Origin: Macrostomum lignano
Taxonomy: Eukaryota
NCBI GenBank assembly: GCA_002269645.1
Contig: NIVC01000712.1
Coordinates: 62,001-126,000, forward strand
DNA length: 64,000 nt
Reading direction: 5' to 3'
Shown here: positions 4,101-41,500 of the stretch, piece by piece
Layout: every line of letters starts with the position of its first letter
How positions within the stretch are numbered: position 1 is the stretch's first letter
Program-made: the position numbers and the translations under genes
The notes under the pieces: model-generated
Databases searched by the model: none
Told to the model about the DNA's origin: nothing
The model's input: the letters and a program-made list of their open reading frames with translations, nothing else

Positions 4101-4540
4101 TGTTGAGAGAAAAACGCAGACTGTAAACCAGCGACTAGAAAAATAAAAGCAAAAAGATTTCAACTGCTTTTGTGCTGTAATTAAACTTAAAAAATTAAAT
4201 ACAAAAATTCAAGTACAGACTGTGCAACGCTTACTACTTACTTATTATTATAGCGGAGGTAATTACGAATATTATTGCACTACAAATATAGATTAGTATA
4301 AAAGGGCTGGGCAGCTGGTAAAAAGGTTGCTTAACAAACCAAAATGTTATCATGGAGAAGCGATGTATTAATAAATTGCACTTTATAACCGGGGTCGAGA
4401 AGCCAAAAGCCAATGAATAAATTTCTAAATTTACGAGTTGTATACCACTGGACAACAGCTGCTTAATAATGCACGAAAAATGGGTTTATTAATAAATTGA
4501 ACAAGTACAGGTTGTTTACTTTAATTGCGCCAGGCTAGTT

Positions 4541-5478
4541 AAATAAATTTCTGTAGTCTATGTATGGCCAGGCCTAAGTGGGGAATATATACATTTCTGT
4601 AGTCTTTGGCCAGGCCCAAGTGGGAAATAAATACATTTCTGTAGTCTATGGCCAGGCCGAAGCGGGGAATAAATACATTTCTGTAGTCTTTGGCCAGGCC
4701 TAAGTGGGGAATAAATACGTTTCTGTAGTCTATGGCCAGGCCGAAGTGGGAAATAAATACATTTCTGTAGTCTATGGCCAGACCCAAGTGGGGAATAAAT
4801 ACATTTCTGTAGTCTATGGCCAGACCCAAGTGGGGAATAAATACATTTCTGTAGTCTATGGCCAGGCCCAAGTGGGGAATAAATACGTTTCTGTAGTCTA
4901 TGGCCAGGCCGAAGTGGGAAATAAATACATTTCTGTAGTCTATGGCCAGACCCAAGTGGGGAATAAATACATTTCTGTAGTCTATGGCCAGGCCCAAGTG
5001 GGGAATAAATAAATTTCTGTAGTCTATGGCCAGGCCGAAGTGGGGAATAAATACATTTCTGTAGTCTATGGCCAGGCCTAAGTGGGGAATAAATACATTT
5101 CTGTAGTCTATGGCCAGGCCGAAGCGGGGAATAAATACATTTCTGTAGTCTATGGCCAGGCCTAAGTGGGAAATAAATACATTTCTGTAGTCTATGGCCA
5201 GGCCGAAGCGGGGAATAAATACATTTCTGTAGTCTTTGGCCAGGCCTAAGTGGGGAATAAATACATTTCTGTAGTCTATGGCCAGGCCGAAGTGGGAAAT
5301 AAATACATTTCTGTAGTCTATGGCCAGACCCAAGTGGGGAATAAATACATTTCTGTAGTCTATGGCCAGGCCCAAGTGGGGAATAAATAAATTTCTGTAG
5401 TCTATGGCCAGGCCGAAGTGGGGAATAAATACATTTCTGTAGTCTATGGCCAGGCCCAAGTGGGGAATAAATATAAAT
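4541..5478. repeat. 42-bp minisatellite, ~22 copies
   Basis: Unit gaataaatacatttctgtagtctatggccaggcccaagtggg; the 14-aa periodicity in the ORF track confirms the unit length. Confidence 0.95.
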
Positions 5479-6081: not shown

Positions 6082-9000
6082 TCAAATATCGCTCTCGTGA
6101 TGCTTATTGCCCTTCTTCCTATTGTCTATGGTTGACATGCTGAAATCGTTCACATTGTCGTCAAGAATTTTGTCCTCCTTGCTGAAGCCCGTCTGCTGGT
6201 AGATGATGTCATTTAGTAGCTAAAATGAAAAACAATGCGACAATAAAACCAAGGTCAGTTTCTTCAGTTGTGACACTTGCGGATGAAGAAAATAGAAATG
6301 ATTGTTTTGTTCTGTAGAGTCTATGGCTGAACTCTCCTTTCTAGCTTTGATCTGCTGTCTATGGCCAGAACTTTCATTTCTAGCTTTGATCTGCTGTCTA
6401 TGGCCAGAACTTTCATTTCTAGCTTTGATCTGCTGTCTATGGCCAGAACTTTCATTTCCAGCTTTGATCTTCTGTCTATGGCCAGAACTTTCATTTCTAG
6501 CTTTGATCTGCTGTCTATGGCCAGAACTCTCCTTTCTAGCTTTGATCTGCTGTCTATGGCCAGAACTTCCTTTCTAGCTTTGATCTGCTGTCTATGGCCA
6601 GAGCTCCCCTTTCTAGCTTTGATCTGCTGTCTATGGCCAGAACTTCCTTTCTAGCTTTGATCTGCTGTCTATGGCCAGAGCTCCCCTTTCTAGCTTTGAT
6701 CTGCTGTCTATGGCCAGAACTTCCTTTCTAGCTTTGATCTGCTGTCTATGGCCAGAACTTTCATTTCCAGCTTTGAACTGCTGTCTATGGCCAGAACTTT
6801 CATTTCTAGCTTCGATATGCTGTCTATGGCCAGAACTTTCATTTCTAGCTTCGATATGCTGTCTATGGCCAGAACAGACGGATTTGACGCTTAATCTTAG
6901 AATTTGATAGCAACAAACAGATAGTAGGCTGACGAGGCTGTTAAAAATGACTATAAAAAGCGAGTGACCAAACAAATCTAGATCATAAAAAGCTATTAAT
7001 ACTACTTACATCGTCATCTTCGCCCTCCTCGGATACGATTAGATTGCGTCTAGCGGCAGCTTTCGACTCGGTCTTGCGCACTGATGGCATTGGAGCTCCA
7101 TTTAGCTGGTGGAGGTTGTCGATTTGGTGGCATTGATTAAATAAGCTTGGATCTATTAATAGTAGCACTTTCTATATGTCAGTATCTTTCGATCCATCTC
7201 ACCCCTGTATCTCAGAGTCTATTTCTCACCCCCTGTATCTCAGAGTCTATATCTCACCCCTGTGTCTCAGAGTCTATATCTCACCCCTGTGTCTCAGAGT
7301 CTATATCTCACCCCTGTGTCTCAGAGTCTATATCTCACCCCTGTGTCTCAGAGTCTATATCTCACCCCTGTGTCTCAGAGTCTATATCTCACCCCTGTGT
7401 CTCAGAGTCTACATCTCACCCCTGTGTCTCAGAGTCTATATCTCACCCCTGTGTCTCAGAGTCTATATCTCACCCCTGTGTCTCAGAGTCTATATCTCAC
7501 CCCTGTGTCTCAGAGTCTATATCTCACCCCTGTTTCTCAGAGTCTATATCTCACCCCTGTTTCTCAGAGTCTATATCTCACCCCTGTATCTCAGAGTCTA
7601 TATCTCACCCCTGTGTCTCAGAGTCTATATCTCACCCCTGTGTCTCAGAGTCTATATTTCACCCCTGTTTCTCAGAGTCTATATCTCACCCCTGTTTCTC
7701 AGAGTCTATATCTCACCCCTGTGTCTCAGAGTCTATATCTCACCCCTGTGTCTCAGAGTCTACATCTCACCCCTGTGTCTCAGAGTCTATATCTCACCCC
7801 TGTATCTCAGAGTCTATATCTCACCCCTGTGTCTCAGAGTCTACATCTCACCCCTGTGTCTCAGAGTCTATATTTCACCCCTGTTTCTCAGAGTCTATAT
7901 CTCACCCCTGTTTCTCAGAGTCTATATCTCACCCCTGTGTCTCAGAGTCTATATCTCACCCCTGTGTCTCAGAGTCTATATCTCACCCCTGTGTCTCAGA
8001 GTCTATATCTCACCCCTGTGTCTCAGAGTCTATATCTCACCCCTGTGTCTCAGAGTCTATATCTCACCCCTGTGTCTCAGAGTCTATATCTCACCCCTGT
8101 GTCTCAGAGTCTATATCTCACCCCTGTGTCTCAGAGTCTATATCTCACCCCTGTGTCTCAGAGTCTATATCTCACCCCTGTGTCTCAGAGTCTATATCTC
8201 ACCCCTGTGTCTCAGAGTCTATATCTCACCCCTGTGTCTCAGAGTCTATATCTCACCCCTGTTTCTCAGAGTCTATATCTCACCCCTGTTTCTCAGAGTC
8301 TATATCTCACCCCTGTGTCTCAGAGTCTATATCTCACCCCTGTGTCTCAGAGTCTATATCTCACCCTTGTGTCTCAGAGTCTATATCTCACCCCTGTTTC
8401 TCAGAGTCTATATCTCACCCCTGTATCTCAGAGTCTATATCTCACCCCTGTGTCTCAGAGTCTACATTTCACCCCTGTGTCTCAGAGTCTATATTTCACC
8501 CCTGTTTCTCAGAGTCTATATCTCACCCCTGTTTCTCAGAGTCTATATCTCACCCCTGTGTCTCAGAGTCTATATCTCACCCCTGTGTCTCAGAGTCTAT
8601 ATCTCACCCCTGTGTCTCAGAGTCTATATCTCACCCCTGTGTCTCAGAGTCTATATCTCACCCCTGTGTCTCAGAGTCTATATCTCACCCCTGTGTCTCA
8701 GAGTCTATATCTCACCCCTGTGTCTCAGAGTCTATATCTCACCCCTGTGTCTCAGAGTCTATATCTCACCCCTGTTTCTCAGAGTCTATATCTCACCCCT
8801 GTGTCTCAGAGTCTATATCTCACCCCTGTGTCTCAGAGTCTATATCTCACCCCTGTGTCTCAGAGTCTATATCTCACCCCTGTTTCTCAGAGTCTATATC
8901 TCACCCCTGTGTCTCAGAGTCTATATCTCACCCCTGTGTCTCAGAGTCTATATCTCACCCCTGTGTCTCAGAGTCTATATCTCACCCCTGTTTCTCAGAG

Positions 9001-12000
9001 TCTATATCTCACCCCTGTGTCTCAGAGTCTATATCTCACCCCTGTGTCTCAGAGTCTATATCTCACCCCTGTGTCTCAGAGTCTATATCTCACCCCTGTG
9101 TCTCAGAGTCTATATCTCACCCCTGTGTCTCAGAGTCTATATCTCACCCCTGTGTCTCAGAGTCTATATCTCACCCCTGTGTCTCAGAGTCTATATCTCA
9201 CCCCTGTGTCTCAGAGTCTATATCTCACCCCTGTGTCTCAGAGTCCATATCTCACCCCTGTGTCTCAGAGTCTATATCTCACCCCTGTGTCTCAGAGTCT
9301 ATATCTCACCCCTGTGTCTCAGAGTCTATATCTCACCCCTGTGTCTCAGAGTCTATATCTCACCCCTGTGTCTCAGAGTCTATATCTCACCCCTGTGTCT
9401 CAGAGTCTATATCTCACCCCTGTGTCTCAGAGTCTATATCTCACCCCTGTGTCTCAGAGTCTATATCTCACCCCTGTGTCTCAGAGTCTATATCTCACCC
9501 CTGTGTCTCAGAGTCTATATCTCACCCCTGTTTCTCAGAGTCTATATCTCACCCCTGTTTCTCAGAGTCTATATCTCACCCCTGTATCTCAGAGTCTATA
9601 TCTCACCCCTGTGTCTCAGAGTCTACATCTCACCCCTGTGTCTCAGAGTCTACATCTCACCCCTGTGTCTCAGAGTCTATATCTCACCCCTGTTTCTCAG
9701 AGTCTATATCTCACCCCTGTGTCTCAGAGTCTATATCTCACCCCTGTGTCTCAGAGTCTATATCTCACCCCTGTGTCTCAGAGTCTATATCTCACCCCTG
9801 TGTCTCAGAGTCTATATCTCACCCCTGTGTCTCAGAGTCTATATCTCACCCCTGTGTCTCAGAGTCTATATCTCACCCCTGTGTCTCAGAGTCTATATCT
9901 CACCCCTGTGTCTCAGAGTCTATATCTCACCCCTGTGTCTCAGAGTCTATATCTCACCCCTGTGTCTCAGAGTCTATATCTCACCCCTGTGTCTCAGAGT
10001 CTATATCTCACCCCTGTGTCTCAGAGTCTATATCTCACCCCTGTGTCTCAGAGTCTATATCTCACCCCTGTGTCTCAGAGTCTATATCTCACCCCTGTTT
10101 CTCAGAGTCTATATCTCACCCCTGTTTCTCAGAGTCTATATCTCACCCCTGTGTCTCAGAGTCTATATCTCACCCCTGTGTCTCAGAGTCTATATCTCAC
10201 CCTTGTGTCTCAGAGTCTATATCTCACCCCTGTTTCTCAGAGTCTATATCTCACCCCTGTATCTCAGAGTCTATATCTCACCCCTGTGTCTCAGAGTCTA
10301 CATCTCACCCCTGTGTCTCAGAGTCTATATTTCACCCCTGTTTCTCAGAGTCTATATCTCACCCCTGTTTCTCAGAGTCTATATCTCACCCCTGTGTCTC
10401 AGAGTCTATATCTCACCCCTGTGTCTCAGAGTCTATATCTCACCCCTGTGTCTCAGAGTCTATATCTCACCCCTGTGTCTCAGAGTCTATATCTCACCCC
10501 TGTGTCTCAGAGTCTATATCTCACCCCTGTGTCTCAGAGTCTATATCTCACCCCTGTGTCTCAGAGTCTATATCTCACCCCTGTGTCTCAGAGTCTATAT
10601 CTCACCCCTGTGTCTCAGAGTCTATATCTCACCCCTGTTTCTCAGAGTCTATATCTCACCCCTGTGTCTCAGAGTCTATATCTCACCCCTGTGTCTCAGA
10701 GTCTATATCTCACCCCTGTTTCTCAGAGTCTATATCTCACCCCTGTGTCTCAGAGTCTATATCTCACCCCTGTGTCTCAGAGTCTATATCTCACCCCTGT
10801 GTCTCAGAGTCTATATCTCACCCCTGTGTCTCAGAGTCTATATCTCACCCCTGTGTCTCAGAGTCTATATCTCACCCCTGTGTCTCAGAGTCTATATCTC
10901 ACCCCTGTGTCTCAGAGTCTATATCTCACCCCTGTGTCTCAGAGTCTATATCTCACCCCTGTGTCTCAGAGCCTATATCTCACCCCTGTGTCTCAGAGTC
11001 TATATCTCACCCCTGTGTCTCAGAGTCTATATCTCACCCCTGTGTCTCAGAGTCTATATCTCACCCCTGTGTCTCAGAGCCTATATCTCACCCCTGTTTC
11101 TCAGAGTCTATATCTCACCCCTGTGTCTCAGAGTCTATATCTCACCCCTGTGTCTCAGAGTTTATATCTGACCCTGAGTCTCCCAGTATCTCAGGGGTCT
11201 CCCTGTATCATTCCCCCTCAACCCCCATGGCCCAGTCCTGCATCGCTCACAGATTTCTCTCGCCGCTCAGTCCCGGCAGCGCCAGCGGGCTCAATCTCGT
11301 CACTTGGATGCTCATCATAGCATGGCGGTCCGTGCGATCCGTGAGTCTCCACCACTTTGCTAGTGACAACCTGGCGCACCTGTTTCCGCTTGACAATCCG
11401 TTTAGTGACCTTGTTGCCATGCTCATCCGTGTAGGTTTCCACCTCTTCGACTGGGTCGCCGACTTGTTCGCTCTGTTAAATACAAATTTAGAAAGATGAA
11501 AGTCTGTGACTACTTATAGTAGGCAAAATGCTAAATATGTTAAAACACGAAGGCTACTAACATTAATAAAATGATAGGACAGAACTACAGGTCGACATAT
11601 AGGTACAAAATTAATATAAACAGGCTATACAAATGATTACATATAAACAATAAAAGAAAATATAAACAAAGCCATGCACAAAAAACTGCAAAACGCAAGA
11701 AATCGCTTAAGATTCATTTTATAATCGATTAAAACGGCAGACGACCACACAGGAAGGTTGTAAGCCAGGGATCGGCAATTTCCGGCCCGCGAAGCCTCTC
11801 TATCCGGCTCTCGGGTCCTTCGATCAACTTCGCAATAGCAATTCAGTCAGCTTAAGGTTTGTGTCTCTTTTCGCCTCCTCCTCTTTTCTCTTTTTCTCAT
11901 AATATGAGATATTCGACATATCGGCACTTCGCTTAACACATCTCTGCATTACTGCATCATTTTCTCTCCTCCCTCTGTCTTTTCTCCTCTTTCCCTTCTC

Positions 12001-15000
12001 CCCTATCTCCTCTCTTCTCCTTCCTCTCTCCCGTCTTTTCTCTTTTCCTTCTGTCTTCTCTCCTCTTTCCCTTTTTCTCCGCTTTCCTCTCTCCCCTCTT
12101 CTCTCCTCTCTTCTTTTTCCTCTCTCCCGTCTTTTCTCTTTTCCTTCTGTCTTCTCTCCTCTCTCCCTTTTTCTCCGCTTTCCTCTCTCCCCTCTTCTCT
12201 CCTCTCTTCTTTTTCCTCTCTCCCGTCTTTTCTCTTTTCCTTCTGTCTTCTCTCCTCTCTCCCTTTTTCTCCGCTTTCCTCTCTCCCCTCTTCTCTCCTC
12301 CCCCTGTCTTCTCTCCTCTCTTCTTTTTCCTCTCTCCCCTCTCCTCTCGCTTCTCCCTCCCCTATTATCTCCTCATATCCTCCATCTTTTCTCTCATCCT
12401 ACCTGCGTATCGCTTGCGCCCACCCCTCTCTCCTCTTATCTACTATTCCCTCTCCTTATCAGTCTAATCTGGCCCGCGGCCATGAGCTGGATTCTTTATT
12501 ATCTAGCCATTGGCTTAAGGTAAAAAAGTTTGCAGACCCACTTGCTATAAACAATGATACGTGCATCAAGCAAGGTAAACTACAGGAGGGTAATAGAGGT
12601 ACAATTAGTAGGCTAGGAAGCTAATAAACCGGCTCTAATCCAGATACGCAAGCAGCTAGCAAAGGATTACTTGAGTGACAAAGGTTCGCTCTTTCGGATC
12701 GCCCTGGAAATGATGATGATGCTTCGGATAGCCCTGATGCTCGCAGCCTCCTCCGTCGCCTGCGGCACCGGCCTCAGCCATCTCCATCATGGCCATGGGC
12801 TTGGAGATATTGTCATCGGAGTAGTCCGCAGGCTTTTATTGGAAAAAAATAAGTACGCATTGAACTTTTCAAGTGATAAAATTTTATTAGGGGACATTTG
12901 AAGGTCACGGATACAAACAAGACAATGTACTATTGATCAGACACAGTCGCTACAAACTCTCACCTCCGTTCGGTGCTCGTGAACGGCAGTTCCACCACCG
13001 CCGCCATTGTAGCCGCCGTGCAATTGGCCGGCGTGAATCTGCTGCTTGTTCTCACGGATGACGTCATATTTGTGATCAACAGACGGCAGGTTGGAGTTCT
13101 GCGTTTCGTGATTGGTTGAGATTATTTTAGAGACAAGTGATGCGAAGAATTTCAACAATTATATATTGCAGTTACAGCTTATCACCACCCAGCTTACCCT
13201 CTTCGTGAGGCTTTCCTGAAGCATTCTAGGATCAACGTAGGTAAATCCTTTGGACTTGCGCTGCAATGCAATTTGTGACGGGTGATCATTAGGGATCTGT
13301 GTAGATTGCTTTGGGATCTGTGTAGATTGCTTAGGGATCTGTGTATATTGCTTTGGGATCTGTGTAGATTGCTTAGGGATCTGTGTAGATTGCTTAGGGA
13401 TCTGTGTAGATTGCTTAGGGATCTGTGTAGGGGACCACTAAAAAGGGATCTGTGGGGATCACTAATAAGGGATCTGTGGGGATCACTAAAAAGGGATCTG
13501 TGGGGATCACTAACAAGGGATCTGTGGGGATCACTAATAAGGGATCTGTGGGGATCACTAACAAGGGATCTGTGGGGATCACTAATAAGGGATCTGTGGG
13601 GATCACTAACAAGGGATCTGTGGGGATCACTAATAAGGGATCTGTGGGGACCACTAACAAGGGATCTGTGGGGACCACTAAAAAGGGATCTGTGGGGATC
13701 TTAAAAGATCTGATGGGGATTTTTATGATCCCAACCAGTTTTTTAGGATTGACTTCAATTTTGAAGGGATTTTTGGGAACTATTATAGATAGGAATAATT
13801 TCAAGATTTAGGGCTAAGTTTAAAGAATGATACACAATAGAAATCAGCACTCACGTCCATAACTCCGGTCTTTCCGCTTCGCCGTACGGAATCCTCGCTA
13901 GCCAGACACACTGGAGTCCACTCGTCGCCAGGAGGATATTTGAAGGGCGTCTGGCCGAGATTGACAAACAGAGTCTGGTCCCGCATGCTCACTGTGGGAT
14001 AGAATGCCTCCTGGCTGAGCACTTGGCTGGGCAGCTGGTAGGCGGGGCCCATCAGGGCGCTGTTGCGAGCGAACTGCATCTGGCCGTGGTCCAGATCTAA
14101 GAAGCAGCCAACAACGTCGCCTTTGCCAAACGGTTCGCCATAGCTGTCAATCTCGTCTGAGTGCATCTTTTTGCCTTGATTGCCGGCCAGCCCGAAGCCG
14201 TCGGGATCGGCGCCGTAGCCCCAGCCGGCGGCGTCTCGGCCGATGTCCAGGCCGCCCGACTCGGTGGTCCAGCCGGCTCTGGACAGGCCGCGGGCCTCCT
14301 GCGGCTCCACCTCGTAGTAGAACCGGCCGCCAGCCCGACCGCGGAGACCTTTGTTGGCGCGGACGCCCTGGTTGGTGTTGACGGTTGGATGACTGATTTA
14401 TGCTTGATTGATGACTGGTTGATGACGATTGACAAGAGGTTGATGATGGTTGATGATGGCTGATGATGATTGATGATGATTGTTGATGGTCAATGATGAT
14501 TGATGATAGCTAATGGTGTTTGGTGATGATTGATGACGGTTGATAATAGATTTACAGTGAGAGCTGATAGATAACTGATTGCTAGTTGACTATAGATGCC
14601 GGCTGATGCAAATGCACAACAGTTGCAACTCCCGCGCCCACCTGCCAGCCGAAGCCCAGCTGACTCTGCGCAGAGGCACCGTCGGGTCCCAGCGTCAGTC
14701 CGGGGCCGCTGGTGTCGTGCTGATTCAGCCGCCAGGCGCGCGGATTCTCGGCCTGTTGATTGGCCGGCGCCAAACCGACGGGCCGCCAGACGCCGGCCGG
14801 CCGGTACAGCAGCGGCCTGGCCGGATCGTCGCCGAAGTTCCAGTGGGCGGCGGCGCCGGGGGCGAGGCAGGCGGCCGGGTAGAACACCTCACGGCGCATG
14901 TCGTGCGGCAATTCGTAGGCGAGGCCCAACTCTTTGCCATTGACTGAGTACAGCACAGAGCCGCCGTCTAAGTCGACGAAAACTCCGACAACGTCGCCGC

Positions 15001-18000
15001 TGGCTAGACGATCGCCGTAGGCCTCGGCGACGCCGCGGTTGTACTTTTCGCCGTTGGCCCCGTAGCCGAAACCGTGGGCGTCGTCGCCTAGGCGCAGACT
15101 GGCGGAGCTGGTCGACCAGCCAACTCTGGCTGGCACAGGCTGATCGCCGGCAGGTGTTGCCATGGTAACCGTGGCTTCGTAGTACCACTGGCCGCCGTTG
15201 CAAACTCCGCGATCGGTACGGCAGCCCTGGGATAGGAATGCGTCATTGTTGATAAATGCAGTTTTTAATACCATTGACTCTATCAAATTAAAGTACACGT
15301 GTGACTAAAGTACAAATGTGCCAGTTCTAGAGTACAGATGTATTAGTTTAAATAGTTTTTTATTACAGGGTCGCCACACACACCCTCAATTACCCTAGCT
15401 AAAACCTGATACCCATTTTGCAGCTGGGTGAACTGAAGCAATGCAGAGTTACGAGTAAGTGTCTTGCTTAAGGACACGAGTTGTTCCAAGTAGGTTGATA
15501 ATCGAATCCCCGACTTTTCAGTGGTAAGCCCGACACTAAACTACTAGGCTGAAATCCCTCAAAACACACACTAGTACACATGTACTAGTTCAAAAAGTAC
15601 ACATGTACTAGTTCAAAAAGTACACATGCACTAGTTCAAAAAGTACACATGTACTAGTTCAAAAAGTACACATGCACTAATTCAAAAAGTACACATGTAC
15701 TTGTTCAAAAAGTACACATGTACTAGTTCAAAAAGTACACATGTACTAGTTCAAAAAGTACACATGTACTAGTTCAAAAAGTACACATGTACTAGCTCAA
15801 AAAGCACATTTAAATAGTGCACACAGCAGAGCTTATAGCTGATGGAAAATTAAAGCAGCTCACCTGCCAATCAGGCGCCCCGACGGGACAGGCGCCAACT
15901 GATCGGCCAGAGTCCAGACTGGCTGACAGCATTGGCTCAGCGTCGGCCGGAGACATGTGCCAACGGGACGGCCGTTCAACCACCAGCTCAGGTCGACGGT
16001 CCATCTGATCGCGTTGCTGCTGCTGCTGCATTTGCATCTGTTGCTGGCGCCACAAGGTGACGTCGCTAATAGTGCCGTCCCCGGCGCCGCCGTAGATGTT
16101 GCCGCGAGATCCGTTGGCAGCGGCGGCTCGCAGCTCGCGATTGTAGGCGTCCTCTGAGGAATTTGAATTCAATGTTACAAGGATTTGCAATTTGGAATGA
16201 AATTGAAGCCTGCAGCATTGAGACTTAATTTTGAAGGATTTTATACCTGAGAAGGGTTTTGGATTAGGGATTTGGGGAGGATTATGGATAAGAAAATTAT
16301 GGAGTTGAATAGGATTAGGGACTTGAGGAGGATTAGGGATTTGAGAACTAGGGATTTTAAAAGGATTGGGGATCCCGTGTGGCCATCTGATCAGGTTTTT
16401 CGCCCGGTAGGCGATCGGGATTTTTGCCCGGTTTGTAATACATTTTTTTCTATCTAAAAACCCGAAAATCCTCGGGAAAGTGGTCTCGAAAACGGACGAA
16501 GACGGCAGTTTCGTCTGGTTGTTCGTCAGGAATTTCGTAGAGGACATCAGGTATTTTCTCGGGTTTCTCTTCGGCTACTCAAACTGATGAGTACCCTGAA
16601 TAAAACCCGACAAATGACCGGATGAAAGTGCAATAGCAGAACCCGGCAAATAACCGGGGCAAAATCAGACTAAAACCTAACGAAAGCGACACGACGACCC
16701 AACCGGACGAATATCTGGAGCAAAATCAGACTAAAACCTAACGAAAGCGACACGACGACCCAACCGGACGAATATCTGGAGCAAAATCAGACTAAAACCT
16801 AACGAAAGCGACACGACGACCCAACCGGACGAATATCTGGAGCAAAATCAGACTAAAACCTAACGAAAGCGACACGACGACCCAACCGGACGAATATCTG
16901 GAGCAAAATCAGACTAAAACCTAACGAAAGCGACACGACGACCCAACCGGACGAATATCTGGAGCAAAATCAGACTAAAACCTAACGAAAGCGACACGAC
17001 GACCCAACCGGACGAATATCTGGAGCAAAATCAGACTAAAACCTAACAAAAGCGACACGACGACCCAACCGGACGAATATCTGGAGCAAAATCAGACTAA
17101 AACCTAACAAAAGCGACACGACGACCCAACCGGACGAATACCCGGAGCAAAATCAGACTAAAACCTAACGAAAGCGACACGACGACCCAACCGGACGAAT
17201 ATCCGGAGCAAAATCAGACTAAAACCTAACGAAAGCGACACGACGACCCAACCGGACGAATATCTGGAGCAAAATCAGACTAAAACCTAACGAAAGCGAC
17301 ACGACGACCCAACCGGACGAATATCTGGAGCAAAATCAGACTAAAACCTAACAAAAGCGACACGACGACCCAACCGGACGAATACCCGGAGCAAAATCAG
17401 ACTAAAACCTAACGAAAGCGACACGACGACCCAACCGGACGAATATCTGGAGCAAAATCAGACTAAAACCTAACGAAAGCGACACGACGACCCAACCGGA
17501 CGAATATCTGGAGCAAAATCAGACTAAAACCTAACGAAAGCGACACGACGACCCAACCGGACGAATATCTGGAGCAAAATCAGACTAAAACCTAACGAAA
17601 GCGACACGACGACCCAACCGGACGAATATCTGGAGCAAAATCAGACTAAAACCTAACGAAAGCGACACGACGACCCAACCGGACGAATATCTGGAGCAAA
17701 ATCAGACTAAAACCTAACGAAAGCGACACGACGACCCAACCGGACGAATATCTGGAGCAAAATCAGACTAAAACCTAACAAAAGCGACACGACGACCCAA
17801 CCGGACGAATATCTGGAGCAAAATCAGACTAAAACCTAACGAAAGCGACACGACGACCCAACCGGACGAATATCTGGAGCAAAATCAGACTAAAACCTAA
17901 CGAAAGCGACACGACGACCCAACCGGACGAATATCTGGAGCAAAATCAGACTAAAACCTAACGAAAGCGACACGACGACCCAACCGGACGAATACCCGGA

Positions 18001-21000
18001 GCAAAATCAGACTAAAACCTAACAAAAGCGACACGACGACCCAACCGGACGAATATCTGGAGCAAAATCAGACTAAAACCTAACGAAAGCGACACGACGA
18101 TCAAACCGGACGAAAAACCCTGCATCCCTATCAAATTGTGTCTACTCTCGGAAATATGTAGTGCCGACTTAGTAAAACATCTACAGTGCGCTTCTGTCAA
18201 CGGATACCGTGAAGAGTGAAGAAGTAAGACAATTGTCAGTGTTAATACAAAATATGTAACGTTCCATCTTGCAATTCATCAAACTGTTCCAAATCACCTA
18301 CAAGATCAATATACTCCTCTGTTTTTTTATTCCAAAGATGTTGTAGAATACAGTCAGTAGGCGCATAGTCGCTAGTCATCTAGGCGCATAAATGCGGGAA
18401 TTTAAAATCACTTCTGACTGGCCAAAAGTATGTTGGAATCCCACAGTAGCATGCAGCCTTCAGAAATGTGTGCGATGACAGCATTAAAATGACATATTTT
18501 TATTCTCAGTTTACGTGAACTACGCTCGTAATGTAACATACGAAGACGCTCATATGGTATATATAAAGATGAGCGGAAAAAATACTGCAAGAGAACAAAA
18601 CAGGAGCACATTACAGGACATGCAATTACAAGAAAATCTTCATGTCAATTGTCAATTATACACTGTGTCTCCCATACCATTTTCAACCCAATCCTGAATT
18701 AAAGGCTTTCATCAGCTCTTTTCTCCGGCTCTTGTCCGGTCGAAGAACCAGAGAAAGAACCGGGCAAAATTCCAGGCGGAATTGTTATTTCATCCGCTTT
18801 TACTCCGGATTTGCCTGCGTTACTAAACTGGTTCCAAACCTGGCGAAGGACCGGGTAAAAAACCAGAGCACTCGTACGGTTTTTCCTCCGGAATTTCGCC
18901 TGGTTTAGAAAGGCAGAGAAAAACCGGATAAATTCGCCTGGTTTATGTTCTTCGCCTGGAAATGGGGCAAAAAACATAAGCAAGCCAGAGCAAAACCGGG
19001 CGAAAAACCTGATCGGATGGCCACACGGGATTTAAAGACTACGGATTTAAATAGGATTAGGGATTTGAGGAAGATTAGGGATTTGAGGACGACTAGGGAT
19101 TTGAATAGGATTAAGGATTTGAGGAGGAGGATTAGGGATTTAAAGACTACGGATTTGAATAGGATTAGGGATCTGGGGAGGACTAGGGATTTAAAAAGGA
19201 TTACGGATTCGAAGATAATTAGAGATTTGAAGTCAACTACAGAATTATACTGAAGTATAAGGACAGTCAGAGAAATTGAGATTCAATACCAAGGATTTTG
19301 AATTTGAAGGATTTTGGATTTGAAGGGGCTCAGGGTTCGGGATTCTTAACTGGGATTCGAATTGCATAATATTTGAATCACACCTTTCTGTCTGAAGCTC
19401 TTGCGCATATCGCTAGTAACGGGCATCTCCTGATAGTTGCCGTAGGTCTGATCGTTGAGCTGGTCGCGAGTCGGCCCAGTGTAATTCCATTTGTTCTTGA
19501 ATGTGCCAGGAATCAGCGGCTTGGACGGCTTCTCCGGCGATTTGAGTCTGCGCGGGTTGAGCCATAGTAACGGATTAGGCGAGCTTTAGATTGTGCAGAG
19601 ATGAATACGGTAGGGAATTAACAATGACTATAGGGAGAGGCCGATGGGACGGCTCAGAGGGAAATAACAGCTTGGATAATCCAGGCATTAATCCAGTAGA
19701 TATTATTGATTATCTAAGGGTTAATCCAGTAGGGATTATCGATAAAGGATTATTGATTATTGAAGAATTAACCAGTAGAGATTATCTATAATCCAAGATT
19801 ATTGATTATCTAAGGATTAATCCGGTAGAGATTATCGATAATCCAACGATTATTGATTATCTAAGGATTAATTCAGTAGAGATGATCTATATTTAAGGAT
19901 TATTGATTATTCAATAAAGATTATTGATTATCCAGTAAAGATTACCGATAATCCAAGGATTATTGATTATTGAAGGATTAATCCAGTAGAGATTATCTAT
20001 AATCCAAGGATTATTGCTAGTCTAAGGATTAATCCAGTAAAGATTATTGATAATCCGGAAGCGAACGTCAATAATCCAAGGATTAACTAAGCAAGGATTA
20101 GCCATAATCCAGGGATAAGCACTTCGGGGATGAAAAAAAGTCTTGAACTTCAAGCAAAGCAAAGCGTTAAACCAAAGCTCTCAAAGTTATTCCTCACCGG
20201 AAGAAGCCGTGATGCTCAACCACAGCCCGCCACAACCGCTTGGCCAGCTTAGCCGAGGCGCACTTGAACTCAACCACAGTCTCAGCTTTCGAGTCGCGCT
20301 CCGACTCAGTCCTGATGCCAATCTTGAGCGTATTCCGCTTATAGGACACTTTGAGAATCTTTGGCCAAGAGTAGCGACCAATCCGCAGGCTGTTGCGGTA
20401 CACCAGCACGCCCGAATGATACACGCCAACAAAGACCTCCTCGCCCATGCTGTCCTTGGCCTCGTGCATGTCCAATCCGTACATAGCCAGCTTCTTGGCA
20501 TTCTGCAAGAAATGCATATCGGCCTCCTCGGGCGTCATGCCCTGGTGAGTTTTGTGCAACTCGCTGACTCGTTCCATGAGTTCGCGATGACTGCGGAATT
20601 CCTCCGGACAGAATGGACAGTCCTGCAGGTACAGCAGGCTGGTCATCTTCTCGTCGCTTGGCTCAAAATCGCCGATCTCGGATTGGACAACGTAGCTGCC
20701 CAAGATGATGTAGGTGATGAAGGAGCAGGGCAAGGCGTCGGCCATGAGATTCTGGCGAATCTGGAGAGCCATGTAGTAGCGGGTGAGATTCTCGCGGAGA
20801 TTCTCCGGATCGGGCGGATAGAACTTCACCATGAAGTCCAGCTTCCATTCGTTCTCTGCGGATTTTTAGGGGGGGGGTGGGTGTCGAGCTGCCTGTTTTG
20901 CTGCGGTTAATTAAAGTGCTCTTTGTACTCTAATTTCCCTTTTCTACATCAGAAGCGTCCAGAGTGACAGTGGCGTGACAATCACGTGACGGTATCGTGG

Positions 21001-24000
21001 CAATCACGTGACGGTATCGTGACAATCACGTGACAGTATCGTGGCAATCACGTGACAGTATCGTGGCAATCACGTGACGGTATTGTGACAATCACGTGAC
21101 GGCATTGTGACAATCACGTGACGGTGTCGTGACAGTCACGTGACAATTATGTGACAGTATCGTGACAATCACGTGACAATATCGTGACAATCACGTGACA
21201 GTATCGTGGCAATCACGTGACGGTATCGTGGCAATCACGTGACGGTATCGTGACAATCACGTGACAGTATCGTGGCAATCACGTGACAGTATCGTGGCAA
21301 TCACGTGACGGTATTGTGACAATCACGTGACGGTATTGTGACAATCACGTGACAGTGTCGTGACAATCAAGTGACAGTGTCGTCGTAATCACGTGACAGT
21401 ATCGTGACAATTATGTGACAGTATCGTGACAATCACGTGACAATCACGTGACAGTATCGTGACAATCACGTGACAGTATTGCGACAAAAAACACGTGATG
21501 GGAGTCAGGATACAAGCTATTTTTACACAATCACTTGACAGACACAAACAACCTGGAAAATTGTATTTTATAGGAAATACGGTACTCTAAGATAACGAAA
21601 AATATGTTGATAATGCCATAACTATTGATAGAACGGATTTCCAGGCACGCCAAGGAAACTCTCAATAGTAAATACCAAGCAACAGTACTGAGATAAAAGT
21701 ACAGCGCTAGGTTCTATAGTATTAGCGGGCAGGCAGACAGACAGACAGATCCCAGACAGGGAGATCGGGGGAGAAATGTACAGAGCAGAGAAGAGGGATA
21801 GAAAAGATCAATGTGGGTTTGGTGGCTCAGCGCGCATCGCATCTGACAGTCCACTCACACTGCTCAAACTTCTTATATAAAAATGTGAGCAATAGGAAAT
21901 ACTGTTAGTACGTATGCATCATAATCATTTTTTCTAAAATCTAAATCCCTAAGGGAGATTCCGCTAGGCGCAGAATTGAACCCACCTACCCGACTAAGCC
22001 TTCTACTTAAACTGAGTGTTCCCCAAAAATGGCAGCCTTAAAAATATCCCTCTTGCATCTGGGGGAGTGAGGGAAACAGAAGGGCTGGGGGATGGGAGGG
22101 GAGACGCGTTAAGGCAGCTCTCTGACTCAGCCAGTGGTGGTTGAGATGTGCAGAGAAACGTAGAATGCTGTCGATGATTGTGCAGGCAAACCCAATTCAT
22201 CTCCTCATCTGACTGTCCCGACAGACTCCGATAATGCCTTAAACATAGCAATAGTGATCCTCAAGTGTGACCATGATGTGACCGTCAATTTGACTTGCGA
22301 AAGATGAAAATACTGTCATTGTGACCCTTGTGTGTTATTCCAGTCACATTTGACGGTCACATTTGAGGGCCACATGAGCGACCATTTGTTTGGCGGTCAC
22401 ATTTGAGGGCCACATGAGTGACCATTTGTTTGACGGTCACATCGCAGGGTCACATGAGTGAACATTTGTTTGACGGTCACATTTGAGGGCCACATGAGTG
22501 ACCATTTGTTTGACGGTCACATCGCAGGGTCACATGAGTGACCATTTGTTTGACGGTCACATTTGAGGGCCACATGAGTGACCATTTGTTTGACGGTCAC
22601 ATCGCAGGGTCACATGAGTGACCATTTGTTTGACGGTCACATTTGAGGGCCACATGAGTGACCATTTGTTTGACGGTCACATTTGAGGGCCACATGAGTG
22701 ACCATTTGTTTGACGGTCACATCGCAGGGTCACATGAGTGACCATTTGTTTGACGGTCACATTTGAGGGCCACATGAGTGACCATTTGTTTGACGGTCAC
22801 ATCGCAGGGTCACATGAGTGACCATTTGTTTGACGGTCACATTTGAGGGCCACATGAGTGACCATTTGTTTGACGGTCACATTTGAGGGCCACATGAGTG
22901 ACCATTTGTTTGACGGTCACATAAGCGACCGTTAATTTGACGGTTACATCCAAGCGTCACAATAGAGGGTCACATGCAATTTGCTTTGTTTTAACTGTCA
23001 TCAAAACGGTCACATAGTCAAAATGTGACCGGTCCCAGTTTTATACAGGACAGAAAGCCGAAAACAGTGAAAGCGAAAGTCGAAATGAGGTCGAATGGGA
23101 AGATGCAAAAGCCCCCCTTCCCCTAATTCCTATAGAACGCCAGACGGGCCTGTTAAGATCTCTTAACAACCCCCTCTAGTTGATGGCTACCAGAGTCGGG
23201 CAGGCAGACAGGCAGGCCGCATGTGTCAGGGTGTGTGTGTGTGTGGAGTGGAGCCGATTGGAGAGGAGGGTAGGGTAAGGGTGTAGAAAATAGCTGCACA
23301 TATTGTGAAGGGGAGAGAAAAGGGAGTATACATACATACATATATATCCCTTATAATATATAAGCCATAGTCCGCCCAGCAGAACCTACAGACTGGCTAC
23401 AAGATCTGCTGACTGCCAATGCACAAAACATTCCTTTTAACAAATTGCAACAAATGCTTTTTCTAGTCTGCAGTAGTATATTCTAACCACAACTGTATTC
23501 ATCATATATATATAAGCCATATATATCGTACAGTAAAAATAGATTTACACATCTTAGTATAGGCGATGAATAGATACTAACACGGGTCTAACCTTTGCTA
23601 AAAAAGATATATTTACTTCCTAAAATTAGCATCTAGTCAGCAGACTCCATGCGTACATTATATAGATTACTAAAACAAAAATACGAACTAGCTCAGCTTT
23701 CAGGACTGCTGTGATTTATTATTAGAGACAGAGAGCTATGTGCATCTATGGCGCAATTTAAGCGACATTGTCAATACAACCAGTAAGAGGCAGTAATTCC
23801 ACGGACTCCCCTGAGCAGGCACACACTCACACAGTGGTGTACAGCGGCTGTAACTTTATTTATCGTTAGGCATGTACACTTGCCTTAGAGGGTTGGCTCT
23901 TAAAGGCGCAAATAAACAAATAAACAAACAGCAAACACTTACTGCCAATCTGCTTGCCAAGTTTCTTCTCGCCGTTAAGCCAGTACTGTAATAAAAATAA

Positions 24001-38566: not shown

Positions 38567-41500
38567 ATGAAGATTGTCAGCCTAGCCTTTCTCGTACACC
38601 TGTTCATCCTAGGGCATTTGCATCGACCGGTTAGGTCTCAGCAGGACACCGACCTGCAGCTTCAGTCTGGCCAATTCCAACGGCTGCTCATCTTCGTGGA
38701 GGATCGGCGAGGTGTTCAGAAGACTGCCAGTGAGCTACTTCGGCTGATTAAGGAGATAAAGGTCCGTTGGGACTAGGCTTTACGGGAGGAATTGTTGTGA
38801 TGTCAAGACTTACAGGGGGAATGGCTGAGATGTGAAGGCTGCATGGGGTCAGAAGCTACATGTAGTTTATTGAAAAAATATTATTATATTTCTTGTTGTG
38901 CCCCAAAGTGGGGGGAGGCGCTGATTGCTAGTATATTTACTTATATTTGCTAGAATCTACTTATTGTTACTGATATTGGTAGGCTATACAAGCTCGTAGT
39001 TACAAATTATTGAAATTATTGAATACTGATTCGTGAATTAACGAATCAGAATTACATTTTGTCGGTTTGAGTAGCACCTAATAAGATTTAACATTTAGCA
39101 AGCACAGGTCTAATTCTTCAGCGCAAATTTACAACGAAAGCTAGATTTTATTCATTTGAAATACAAAATGCACCAGCGATAACCAGTTTTACGCATAAAC
39201 TACACCAAAATCTAGTGTGGAATACACAGTCAACCAATATGGATCGCCAGCAACTGGACGAAAGTTTTGCGGTTTCATGAAAAAGTAAAGAAGCACTACC
39301 AATGTGAATCATTGAGTATGTCGCTGAACTTCGCGTTTCAACAGTTTAGCAATTAGTTGTCGATAAATTTATCACTGTCGTCCTTGTATTAATGAAAATC
39401 AAATTTAATTTCCAGAGACACAACCGCCTAGCCAAATAAAACTGACCCTATTTTTGCAAATTTACTTACCAGGTCGGTTTTAATGCGGCTTCCAGGCTGC
39501 TGCAGAACCTGACCGCTGCCGTTGGCCGCCCGATGAGGCTCGGCAGCGCCAGCGTCCTGGTGTCGGCCAGGCTCGGCCGCGAGCTTCGAACCGCCGGACT
39601 GCGCGTCGGAGACGCCCGGTGGCAGCGCCGGAATCGAGCCGACTTCGTTGTCACCCACGACGTCGACGCCGATACCGAGGGCTCGGTCGCCATGGAGATC
39701 GGATGCGGCAAGCCCGGCAAGAAAGTCGTCATGCAGGATGCGAGCTTCACGAATGACTCAAACAGCATTGGTTTGTGCTCAGTTGGTAATTGGTACTCAG
39801 CCAGAGCCCTAATATTCGCACACAATCAACTGACCGAGTCCAGTGTGGAACCCCAATTGCAGTGCACCGCAAGGTCGCTCTGTTCTTCTCGCAGTATCGC
39901 TGGGGTCTGCTGAACGAGCAGCCGGTCGGCAGTCCGATCGAGACGGGTCCCGACGGAGAGCTGCGAGTCTCCGCCTGCTCCGCTGAGCTCAGGGTCCGAC
40001 TGGCCGCCGCGGACGGCAGCTCGACGTGCGAGTTCGACGTGAACTCGCGTCGAACGTCTCGAGGCTGCGCGCCGAAGCTGAGCGAGTCGCAGCCGGACGG
40101 TCCGCTTGCGTCGTTCATGTTCGCTCCGTTCCACCGAGCCGTGAACCGCTTCTGCGATGCAAGGTCGAAGGAGCCTCAGCTGCAGCACAACGGCATGGTG
40201 GACAGTCTGATGAACAGGCAGTGCGACGGGCTGAGCGCAGCTGAAGTGCTGCGGAATCACCGAGACTTCTGGGGAACTCCAGACGGTACTCGGCCAGCGC
40301 CGGGCGACATAAGTTTCGACATCGTCGCTGAGAAGTCCAACAGACGCGTAGTTGTCGTCATGGACACCTCTGGTAGCATGAGTGTGAGTTTGGCTTTTTT
40401 ACAAATACCTTCTTGACTGCAATAGTTGAATTATTTTGTAAGGTTATTTGAAATCCTGAAATTATTTCACTATAGGGACTCAGAATTGCAATGATGATCA
40501 GCGCTGTAAACCAGTTTCTACTGGAAATAATCGAAGACGGTTCCGAATGCGCTTTGATCAGCTTTACAAACAGACATTCGGTTCTGTCAAATTTTGTAAG
40601 CATTCAGTCAAGAAGAGACCGAGAACGCCTGTCGAGTCTTGTGTCGAGTCTCCATGCTAACGGAGGAACGTGCATTGGAGGGGCCGTTTCCGCAGCAGCT
40701 TCCGTAATTCACAAAGCTGTTAATGTCAGGATTTGTATTGAATTTGTATTAAGCACGCAGACTTTGTATTTTAGATGCTTGGCTATCACGGTCCGGCTTC
40801 TGCATCTGCTACAGGTCAGATAATTCTTCTCTCTGATGGCGTAGAAGGCTGTCCCGGACGGCTTAACAGCATGATTAGCTTTCTGGCTCATAGCAGCCTT
40901 GAGGTGGTGTCCATTCGCTACGGTGACAAAGCCGATTCGCGAATGGACCGATTGGCGGAGGTTACTGGCGGCCAGAAGTTCTTCGGTGGCACGTCAATCG
41001 CTGACAGCAGCGGCCTACGACTGGCGCTGGGCGCGACGACAACCGCGATCGACGAGTCAAAGAGGACATTGACGGTGGGCTTGAATAGATAATTGCTTTT
41101 CATAATTTGTAAATGCACAAAAGTGACTGTGATTTTTAGTTTTTCTAAAATTTTTCTACAGCTCACCTCAGAAGAGATCGGCAGTAGATTCGTGCGTCGA
41201 AGGTTTAACGTCGACGAGTCAGTCAGACGCGACCTGGTGTTCCGAGTGACAGTGCCATCAAACACAGGCGCTGTGACGCAGCTTCGGCTGCTGCTGAATG
41301 CGCCGTCGGGTCGTGAGTTCGGCTACAGAAACCGCTCCGACATCTACGAAGCAAATGCAGCGATTGGGACCGTTGCAATCCGGGTACCGGACAGCCAAAT
41401 TCAGGTAAACAAATTAATTTTCATTGCTATTCGCTATTTGATTTTTTTACTCCATTCAGTAACTATTCCGCAAGCAGAAAGGTATTTGGATACTGCGAGA

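Follow-up and report, generated by a model that had tools for sequence, protein, structure and literature searches.

The window analysed here is a 64,000-nt stretch of contig NIVC01000712.1 of the flatworm Macrostomum lignano, and all coordinates refer to it. On its minus strand, exons for a FERM domain of the kind found in band 4.1 and coracle are followed by exons for two SPRY domains that resemble the SPRY domain of the RNA helicase DDX1. The locus raises the question whether these exons form one gene and, if they do, what its product is and where the SPRY domains came from. It is very probably a single M. lignano gene, encoding a FERM protein of the 4.1 branch with two tandem DDX1-type SPRY domains in its middle region, an old flatworm design that would act as a cortical scaffold with SPRY docking; the product is not DDX1, because it has no helicase domain. 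Here we present the gene model, the evidence for its domain assignments and its distribution, and the alternatives that were weighed.

Gene model and domain organization

The minus strand of 12800-21500 was read, candidate exons were translated, and domains were assigned with Pfam. Joined together, fourteen minus-strand exons (27574..6085), all with GT-AG splice sites, form a single open reading frame that encodes about 1,140 amino acids (aa). FERM_N, FERM_M and FERM_C come first, then an FA-like segment that is degenerate, then the SPRY tandem (SPRY1 and SPRY2), and last a tail with a weak remnant of the 4.1 C-terminal domain (CTD). Pfam E-values for the gene-model protein were 2.9e-18 (FERM_N), 4.7e-21 to 7e-21 (FERM_M), 9.9e-22 to 3e-21 (FERM_C) and 3e-38 (SPRY, matched twice); as sequence matches, those to FERM and SPRY are far beyond chance.

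The gene exceeds the interval flagged in the initial annotation by three exons on the 5' side and six on the 3' side. Within that interval, all four proposed junctions (19384/16153, 15864/15226, 14642/14367 and 13855/13260) are correct, with canonical sites, and the splice phases of 1, 2, 1, 0, 0 and 0 give a single frame free of stops. The peptides picked out there (RWHMSPAD, AWRLNQHD, WQGCRTDRGV, WQGVRANKGL and VNGKELGLAYELPHDM) are all present in the translation. The exons are as follows; a slash inside a sequence marks an exon boundary.

Exon 1, 27176..27574 (-): N-terminal low-complexity region and start of FERM_N (...KLRPCQVVMLDGSVHSFDVD); acceptor ctcag/ at 27575/27574; in-frame ATG at 27553
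Exon 2, 24384..24488 (-): FERM_N (TNAKAQELFDETCITLGLHEKEYFGLCYRDSNNIF)
Exon 3, 23943..23985 (-): 43-nt FERM_N micro-exon (YWLNGEKKLGKQIG), from a scan of splice sites and phases
Exon 4, 20198..20855 (-): FERM_M and FERM_C; ends ...VVEHHGFF plus CG/gtgagg
Exon 5, 19384..19547 (-): degenerate FA-like segment (RLKSPEKPSKPLIPGTFKNKWNYTGPTRDQ...); cag/A...G/gtgtga
Exon 6, 15864..16153 (-): Gln-rich linker and N-terminal strands of SPRY1 (RWHMSPADAEP...PDWQ); cag/AG...TGGCAG/gtgagc
Exon 7, 14642..15226 (-): SPRY1 core (GCRTDRGV...), inter-SPRY linker and N-terminal strands of SPRY2 (AWRLNQHD...GFGWQ); cag/GGCTGCCGT...TGGCAG/gtgggc
Exon 8, 13855..14367 (-): SPRY2 core (GVRANKGL...TGVMD); cag/GGCGTCCGC...ATGGAC/gtgagt
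Exon 9, 13198..13260 (-): short motif (RKSKGFTYVDPRMLQESLTKR, or RKSKGFTYVDPRMLQESL) just after SPRY2
Exon 10, 12964..13098 (-): tail (NSNLPSVDHKYDVIRENKQQ...)
Exon 11, 12671..12832 (-): 162-nt in-frame exon (PADYSDDNISKP..., or PADYSDDNISKPMAMMEMAEAG...)
Exon 12, 11251..11472 (-): tail (SEQVGDPVEEVETYTDEHGNKVTKRIVKRKQVRQVVTSKVVETH...)
Exon 13, 7010..7105 (-): ...RRNLIVSEEGEDDD; the CTD-like remnant begins here
Exon 14, 6082..6219 (-): LLNDIIYQQTGFSKEDKIL...HESDI and the TGA stop codon (6084-6082); CTD-like remnant

The motif of exon 9 is kept in Schistosoma and Echinostoma as RKVKGWSYIDPS[IV]LEP (residues ~524-545 of the S. japonicum model P0002; C-terminal region of P0220) and may serve as a linear motif for interaction or regulation. 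Exon 11, which the UniProt model P0004 includes and the GenBank model P0097 leaves out, is likely an alternatively spliced cassette exon.

Nearly every intron of the gene contains a long, very regular tandem array, with units of 21-61 bp in up to 148 copies and a length of up to 4 kb; the array at 7196-11182 consists of a 27-bp unit repeated 148 times. These arrays are consistent with the M. lignano genome as a whole, 15% of which is reported to consist of simple and tandem repeats.

Intronic tandem arrays: 6319-6875, 7196-11182, 13430-13700, 15573-15808, 16659-18114, 19702-20056, 20964-21475, 22349-22922, 25209-26006, 26372-27017
Tandem array just 3' of the stop codon: 4540-5473

Transcript support and start codon

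When the full model was used as the query, the search found P0097, the M. lignano GenBank model BOX15_Mlig018785g1 (1137 aa; FERM_N, FERM_M, FERM_C and SPRY). Where BLAST stayed within the exon ends, it is 98.5-100% identical to the exons of the window; the locus is therefore BOX15_Mlig018785g1 or a near-identical copy of it. Exon 1 matches its residues 2-136 (98.5% identity) and exon 3 its residues 170-183 (100%), and with exon 3 included the Pfam match to FERM_N is complete to positions 1-62 of 64. The sole exon of the window model that is missing in P0097 is the cassette at 12832-12671. By its BOX15 locus-tag prefix, which the text of PMC5730564 does not mention, P0097 probably belongs to the submission of that paper. 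The GenBank annotation of M. lignano goes back to assemblies of RNA-seq and transcriptome data, which a pipeline splits at trans-splicing and poly(A) sites (PMC5730564).

A second line of support comes from a related Macrostomum, the 1088-aa protein P0098 of which carries FERM and both SPRY domains. It shares 56% identity with the window protein and 81% with P0099, a paralogue in M. lignano. Its coding sequence lies uninterrupted by introns on two 3.5-kb RNA-type contigs (L002 and L003), which come from separate sequencing runs and have untranslated regions on either side of it, and FERM and both SPRY domains are therefore joined in one mRNA in Macrostomum. The 5' end of L002 was checked for a spliced leader, which was absent. 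A 1105-aa member of the cluster from Dicrocoelium lies on a contig of 3,975 bp. The initial annotation had held that the SPRY exons are part of the FERM gene rather than a nested gene, and P0097, the intron-free mRNA contigs of the relative and the exon order in Schistosoma (see below) all bear this out.

P0097 begins with M-DDTDHGG. At the corresponding position, 27574-27576 (-), the window has the acceptor ctcag/GATGAC and no ATG. Because the Met of P0097 is not encoded in the genome at this acceptor, and because the spliced leader of M. lignano ends in ATG (PMC8629364), the mRNA of this gene is probably trans-spliced, with the start codon supplied by the leader.

Classification of the SPRY domains

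In a HMMER search of the PDB, the SPRY domain of DDX1 (chain 4xw3) was the top match for both SPRY2 (E=1.2e-33) and SPRY1 (E=2.6e-29), and the next families (RyR, Ash2L and RanBP9/10) followed at 1e-13 or weaker. The alignments to 4xw3 start at chain residue 20, upstream of the Pfam SPRY core, and include the N-terminal strands; those of SPRY1, encoded by exon 6, align with residues 20-50. The DDX1 strings that the initial annotation had quoted (KWQMNPYD, WHGCRATKGL and KNGKDLGLAFEIPPHM) are present in this chain, as its HMMER alignment shows. Pairwise BLAST gave 34-42% identity and 89-142 bits against DDX1 SPRY domains, versus 46-67 bits against RyR and Ash2L. A DDX1-SPRY profile scored each flatworm SPRY copy at 100-190 bits, compared with 13-68 bits for an hnRNPU-like, 25-91 for a protist multi-SPRY and 27-77 for a RyR-like profile, bit scores that are to be read with the differing depth of these profiles in mind. 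SPRY1 and SPRY2 share 32-40% identity with each other; SPRY2 of Macrostomum and that of Schistosoma share 49%, with many core residues invariant. An AlphaFold2 model of the SPRY pair (pLDDT 69.9, pTM 0.60) again returned 4xw3 as the top match in a Foldseek search of the PDB (TM-score 0.77-0.79, normalised to the 4xw3 chain; E=1e-14). The assignment of both copies to the DDX1 type is thus well supported by sequence, profile and predicted fold, and the specific match to DDX1 proposed in the initial annotation is upheld by each of these searches.

The resemblance to the DDX1 SPRY domain (4xw3; Kellner & Meinhart 2015, PMC4555926) includes the pattern W-x-M/L-N/S-P-x-D ... W-Q/H-G-C/V-R. The surroundings differ: true DDX1 proteins have the architecture DEAD+SPRY+Helicase_C, with a single SPRY domain inserted into the helicase's RecA-like domain 1, whereas the flatworm protein has two in tandem in a FERM protein, and Pfam found neither DEAD nor Helicase_C in this protein or in its orthologues from other flatworms. 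According to PMC8668186, what the DDX1 SPRY domain does and binds is not known, and the tRNA ligase complex assembles without it, so that it offers no function to carry over to the flatworm pair. Multi-SPRY proteins such as ryanodine receptors and protist kinase-SPRY and EF-hand-SPRY proteins also carry several SPRY domains per chain and are the second-best match in structure and sequence. Their similarity is much weaker, however (27-91 versus 100-190 bits for the DDX1 profile), and they are free of FERM and have unrelated architectures.

Distribution among flatworms

When 1.84 billion representative proteins were scanned exhaustively by HMMER with the SPRY pair, only flatworm proteins scored above 200 bits. 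An earlier search with the pair had likewise returned flatworm double-SPRY proteins first and then only true DDX1 helicases. Pfam gave the following architectures.

Trematode, Dicrocoelium dendriticum: FERM and two SPRY domains
Trematode, Echinostoma caproni: FERM and two SPRY domains
Trematode, Clonorchis sinensis: FERM_C and two SPRY domains (partial model)
Monogenean, Cichlidogyrus casuarinus: FERM and two SPRY domains
Cestode, Mesocestoides corti, two paralogues: FERM and two SPRY domains
Cestode, Schistocephalus solidus: FERM and two SPRY domains

Judged from these sequences, the architecture is common to Macrostomorpha and the three parasitic classes (Neodermata) and is not a local event. 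Its presence in Macrostomorpha, trematodes, cestodes and monogeneans argues for a single origin early in the flatworms and retention since. The lineage-specific event proposed in the initial annotation therefore stands as regards restriction to flatworms, but not as an event local to this worm. Several lineages have two to three paralogues; M. lignano has at least three (P0097, P0099 and P0001/P0005), and a neighbour-joining tree of SPRY domains (see below) suggests, with weak support, two paralogue groups in parasitic flatworms. The non-flatworm multi-SPRY proteins P0230, P0233, P0250, P0261, P0284, P0320 and P0349 were considered and set aside; they carry kinase, EF-hand, E2/F-box or La domains and are FERM-free.

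In a full-text literature search that paired FERM with SPRY, DDX1 or Platyhelminthes, no description of the architecture turned up. To that extent the early claim of an undescribed combination holds, but databases already contain proteins of this kind from at least nine species, under the names 'FERM domain-containing protein' and 'B30.2/SPRY domain-containing protein' or the wrong name 'DDX1'. The gene itself is already public, as a GenBank model with this exon structure, and the architecture is uncharacterised and misnamed in several genomes. Three of the orthologues bear the name 'DDX1' or 'DEAD box helicase 1'; for P0002, P0219 and P0221 'DDX1' is a mislabel, since these proteins have no helicase domain and S. 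japonicum has a separate canonical DDX1.

The S. japonicum 'DDX1' model P0002 (600 aa) contains the SPRY pair only. Its locus (L001; CM038289.1, 12.13-12.20 Mb) has FERM exons directly upstream, which splice into P0002 in frame:

FERM_M exon, L001 2957-3046: upstream of P0002, same strand
FERM_C exon, L001 ~8037-8290: upstream of P0002, same strand, with an apparent 1-nt frameshift at ~8170-8185
FA-like exon, L001 9917-10105: same strand, 3' of the FERM_C exon and open through the annotated Met of P0002

The phase-2 junction FFR/L is identical in S. japonicum and M. lignano. The frameshift in the FERM_C exon probably explains the internal Met start of P0002, its missing FERM domain and its 'DDX1' name.

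Relationship to the 4.1 family

Among the matches listed, the best non-flatworm matches to the FERM region were band 4.1, 4.1-like 1-3 and coracle-type proteins (45-51% identity), in agreement with the 4.1 type assigned to it at the outset; all of these have Pfam FA and most have 4_1_CTD. Neither FA (PF08736) nor 4_1_CTD (PF05902) was matched at E<=10 in the window protein and four orthologues. The exon that the initial annotation had labelled FA is real, with correct boundaries (19547-19384), but does not match PF08736; support for its identity comes from profile-profile comparison, in which hhalign aligned the post-FERM segment of the flatworm proteins with the FA regions of 4.1 proteins weakly, over 51 columns (P=2.7e-5, probability 74%). 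The FA motif RYSGRTQ, invariant in 4.1 proteins, reads (K/R)(W/Y)xYxx in the flatworm proteins.

The C-terminus gave a similar picture. In hhalign, flatworm C-termini matched 4.1 CTDs weakly over 22 columns (P=1.7e-4, probability 49%), with eeD-aLN-aI-etT-ls set against the core DHD-aLaeAI-T-mNPD; the ends EDEALNKAIHETTKLDSD of cestodes and EDDDLLNDIIYQQTGFS of the window protein aligned to DHDKALAEAI-T-MNPD. SAB (spectrin-actin-binding; PF04382) had no Pfam match in the window protein, and the invertebrate 4.1 proteins among the matches listed likewise lack PF04382, so that SAB marks vertebrate 4.1 proteins and not the whole family. The suggestion that SAB and CTD are missing is thus right for SAB, but the C-terminus was not simply lost, as a weak CTD-like remnant lies downstream of the SPRY pair.

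With the other members of the family (EPB41, EPB41L1-3 and Drosophila coracle) the flatworm protein shares the three-lobed FERM domain and the order FERM, FA (here FA-like), variable middle and C-terminal region, its segments aligning weakly to FA right after FERM and to the CTD core at the extreme C-terminus. It differs in a middle region filled by two SPRY domains and in escaping the SAB, FA and 4_1_CTD models. In vertebrate 4.1 proteins the middle region contains the spectrin-actin-binding domain. We read the protein as a diverged member of the 4.1 family with the SPRY pair set into the variable middle region. A 4.1-like FERM-FA head combined with other domains is also seen in PTPN3/PTPN4 (FERM-PDZ-phosphatase), and PTPN3 (P0148) was among the FERM matches; no listed relative outside the flatworms, however, pairs FERM with SPRY.

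Origin of the SPRY pair and alternative explanations

A neighbour-joining tree of 85 SPRY domains (100 bootstraps) placed the flatworm SPRY1 and SPRY2 clades as sisters (support 26, 55 and 21; deep nodes 0-55%), in keeping with a domain that was acquired once and then duplicated in tandem before the flatworm groups diverged. Capture of the SPRY domain from DDX1, as initially proposed, was not borne out by this phylogeny, and such a derivation is plausible but unproven. A phase-0 intron at WQ/G is found in both M. lignano SPRY domains and in SPRY1 of S. japonicum; in SPRY2 of S. japonicum the intron lies 6 codons further downstream. The DDX1 gene of S. japonicum has its introns at other positions than the FERM-SPRY gene (the nearest is NEG/RYYYE, phase 1). 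Intron positions are uninformative on an exon capture from DDX1 at the DNA level. Origin by tandem duplication beside DDX1 was considered and rejected; in S. japonicum the two genes are 48 Mb apart.

Alternatively, the pair may come not from the DDX1 gene but from a lost or unsampled gene with a DDX1-like SPRY domain, or from the ancestor that the DDX1 and hnRNPU types have in common, an origin that we rate as unlikely yet far from negligible. It would agree with a tree in which the SPRY domains of flatworms form the sister clade of a group of DDX1, hnRNPU-like and other domains and do not fall among the DDX1 sequences of metazoans or flatworms, with the near-equal distances between SPRY1, SPRY2 and the DDX1 SPRY (32-42% identity), with the lack of the WQ/G intron in the S. 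japonicum DDX1 gene, and with the occurrence of related SPRY domains in many protist proteins of other architectures. DDX1 is nevertheless the nearest SPRY family by every score and by a wide margin, the similarity extends to the N-terminal strands before the Pfam SPRY core, and tree support is weak, with long flatworm branches that tend to be drawn toward the base. Regarding the structure of the gene, the SPRY-SPRY-tail part might be made mostly from an mRNA of its own, by an internal promoter or by spliced-leader addition at the exon 6 acceptor, the fused form being a minor read-through product or precursor. M. lignano does have operons, and about 7% of its assembled transcripts are precursor mRNAs for several proteins (PMC5730564), but the same pipeline, which cuts at trans-splice sites, left FERM and SPRY joined in P0097 and P0099. 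Moreover, L002 and L003 encode the entire fused protein without introns and between untranslated regions, and splice phases match at all five junctions. SPRY-only database models would suit two products (P0002; P0003, 410 aa with a Met start; P0001; P0217). Against this, the start Met of P0002 sits within the open FA-like exon that is spliced in frame to FERM_C, its missing FERM coincides with the 1-nt frameshift, and P0001, P0004 and P0005 are fragmentary or frameshifted models. We rate this two-product reading as very improbable. An artefact of assembly or annotation, with a DDX1 fragment wrongly joined to a 4.1 gene, could be imagined for assemblies that are repeat-rich and redundant (PMC5730564), for a gene with introns full of long tandem arrays and for orthologues that carry the database name 'DDX1'. 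It is effectively refuted by the identical exon order in the window, an independent GenBank assembly, RNA contigs and at least eight other flatworm genera, by a protein with no DEAD or Helicase_C anywhere, and by the complete canonical DDX1 gene that S. japonicum has on the same chromosome, 48 Mb away.

Besides the SPRY-only models, which leave room for SPRY-only isoforms from an internal promoter or a trans-splice site, four points weigh against a single 4.1-branch FERM gene with a DDX1-type SPRY pair and a cortical role. The Pfam FA and 4_1_CTD models miss the flatworm members, so that it is the FERM domain, together with two weak profile matches, that places them in the 4.1 family; the tree sets the flatworm SPRY domains beside the DDX1 group and not inside it (bootstrap 21-55%); transcript support comes from the deposited annotation and from relatives, not from transcripts of this exact locus; and a scaffold role, localisation and partners are read across from the biology of the 4.1 family and of SPRY domains.

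Proposed role

In 4.1 proteins the FERM lobes engage lipids and membrane-protein tails at the cell cortex. By analogy, those of the flatworm protein would anchor it there, through phosphoinositides and the cytoplasmic tails of membrane proteins. From what is known of SPRY domains (PMC4555926), each copy would be a protein-docking module, and the pair would offer two rigid docking surfaces for protein partners, taking over or adding to the linking role that the central and C-terminal regions have in other animals. Recruitment of DDX1 partners or ribonucleoproteins by the pair, as suggested in the initial annotation, is conceivable but found no support. A bolder version, decidedly unlikely in our estimate, makes the tandem SPRY the main output end of flatworm 4.1, where it would replace the spectrin-actin and CTD links and tether flatworm-specific partners, perhaps RNA-processing or ribonucleoprotein components that in other animals would meet this SPRY surface only on DDX1, to the cortex of epidermis, tegument or junctions.

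Other features of the window

Three further features were noted outside the gene. The open frames of the first line are near-identical, lie about 10 kb apart and look like a tandem gene duplication; the gene presumably has a von Willebrand A-like start. The frame of the second line presumably resembles RIB43A-type ciliary proteins.

39790-40416 and 50209-50823 (+): two near-identical open frames (…VHRKVALFFSQYRWGLL…VVVVMD[TV]SGSMS…)
62141-62776 (-): 211-aa open frame, rich in charged residues, probably coiled-coil (…EWDLYDPEALKKDKPARVHDDDPRCTISSLQKFDGEDL…)
54660-56441 (+): 593-aa open reading frame from ATG, of low complexity and rich in Ser, Glu and Pro

Significance

Several parasite genomes mislabel the gene 'ATP-dependent RNA helicase DDX1' or, as in S. 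japonicum, split it, which can lead orthology tables and work on the true DDX1 astray. It also places a DDX1-type SPRY domain in a second, non-helicase context, and a comparison of the conserved surfaces of both could reveal a binding target. Among the matches listed, 4.1 proteins keep the FERM-FA head and CTD from cnidarians to vertebrates, and a stable insertion of two SPRY domains clearly marks the lineage. In a conserved cytoskeletal adaptor this is a clean innovation, although domain shuffling is common; it suggests that the membrane skeleton of flatworms, with flukes, tapeworms and monogeneans among them, is linked to something different. If the SPRY pair is indeed the output end of flatworm 4.1, this would amount to a shared rewiring of the flatworm membrane skeleton, present in all major parasitic flatworm groups.

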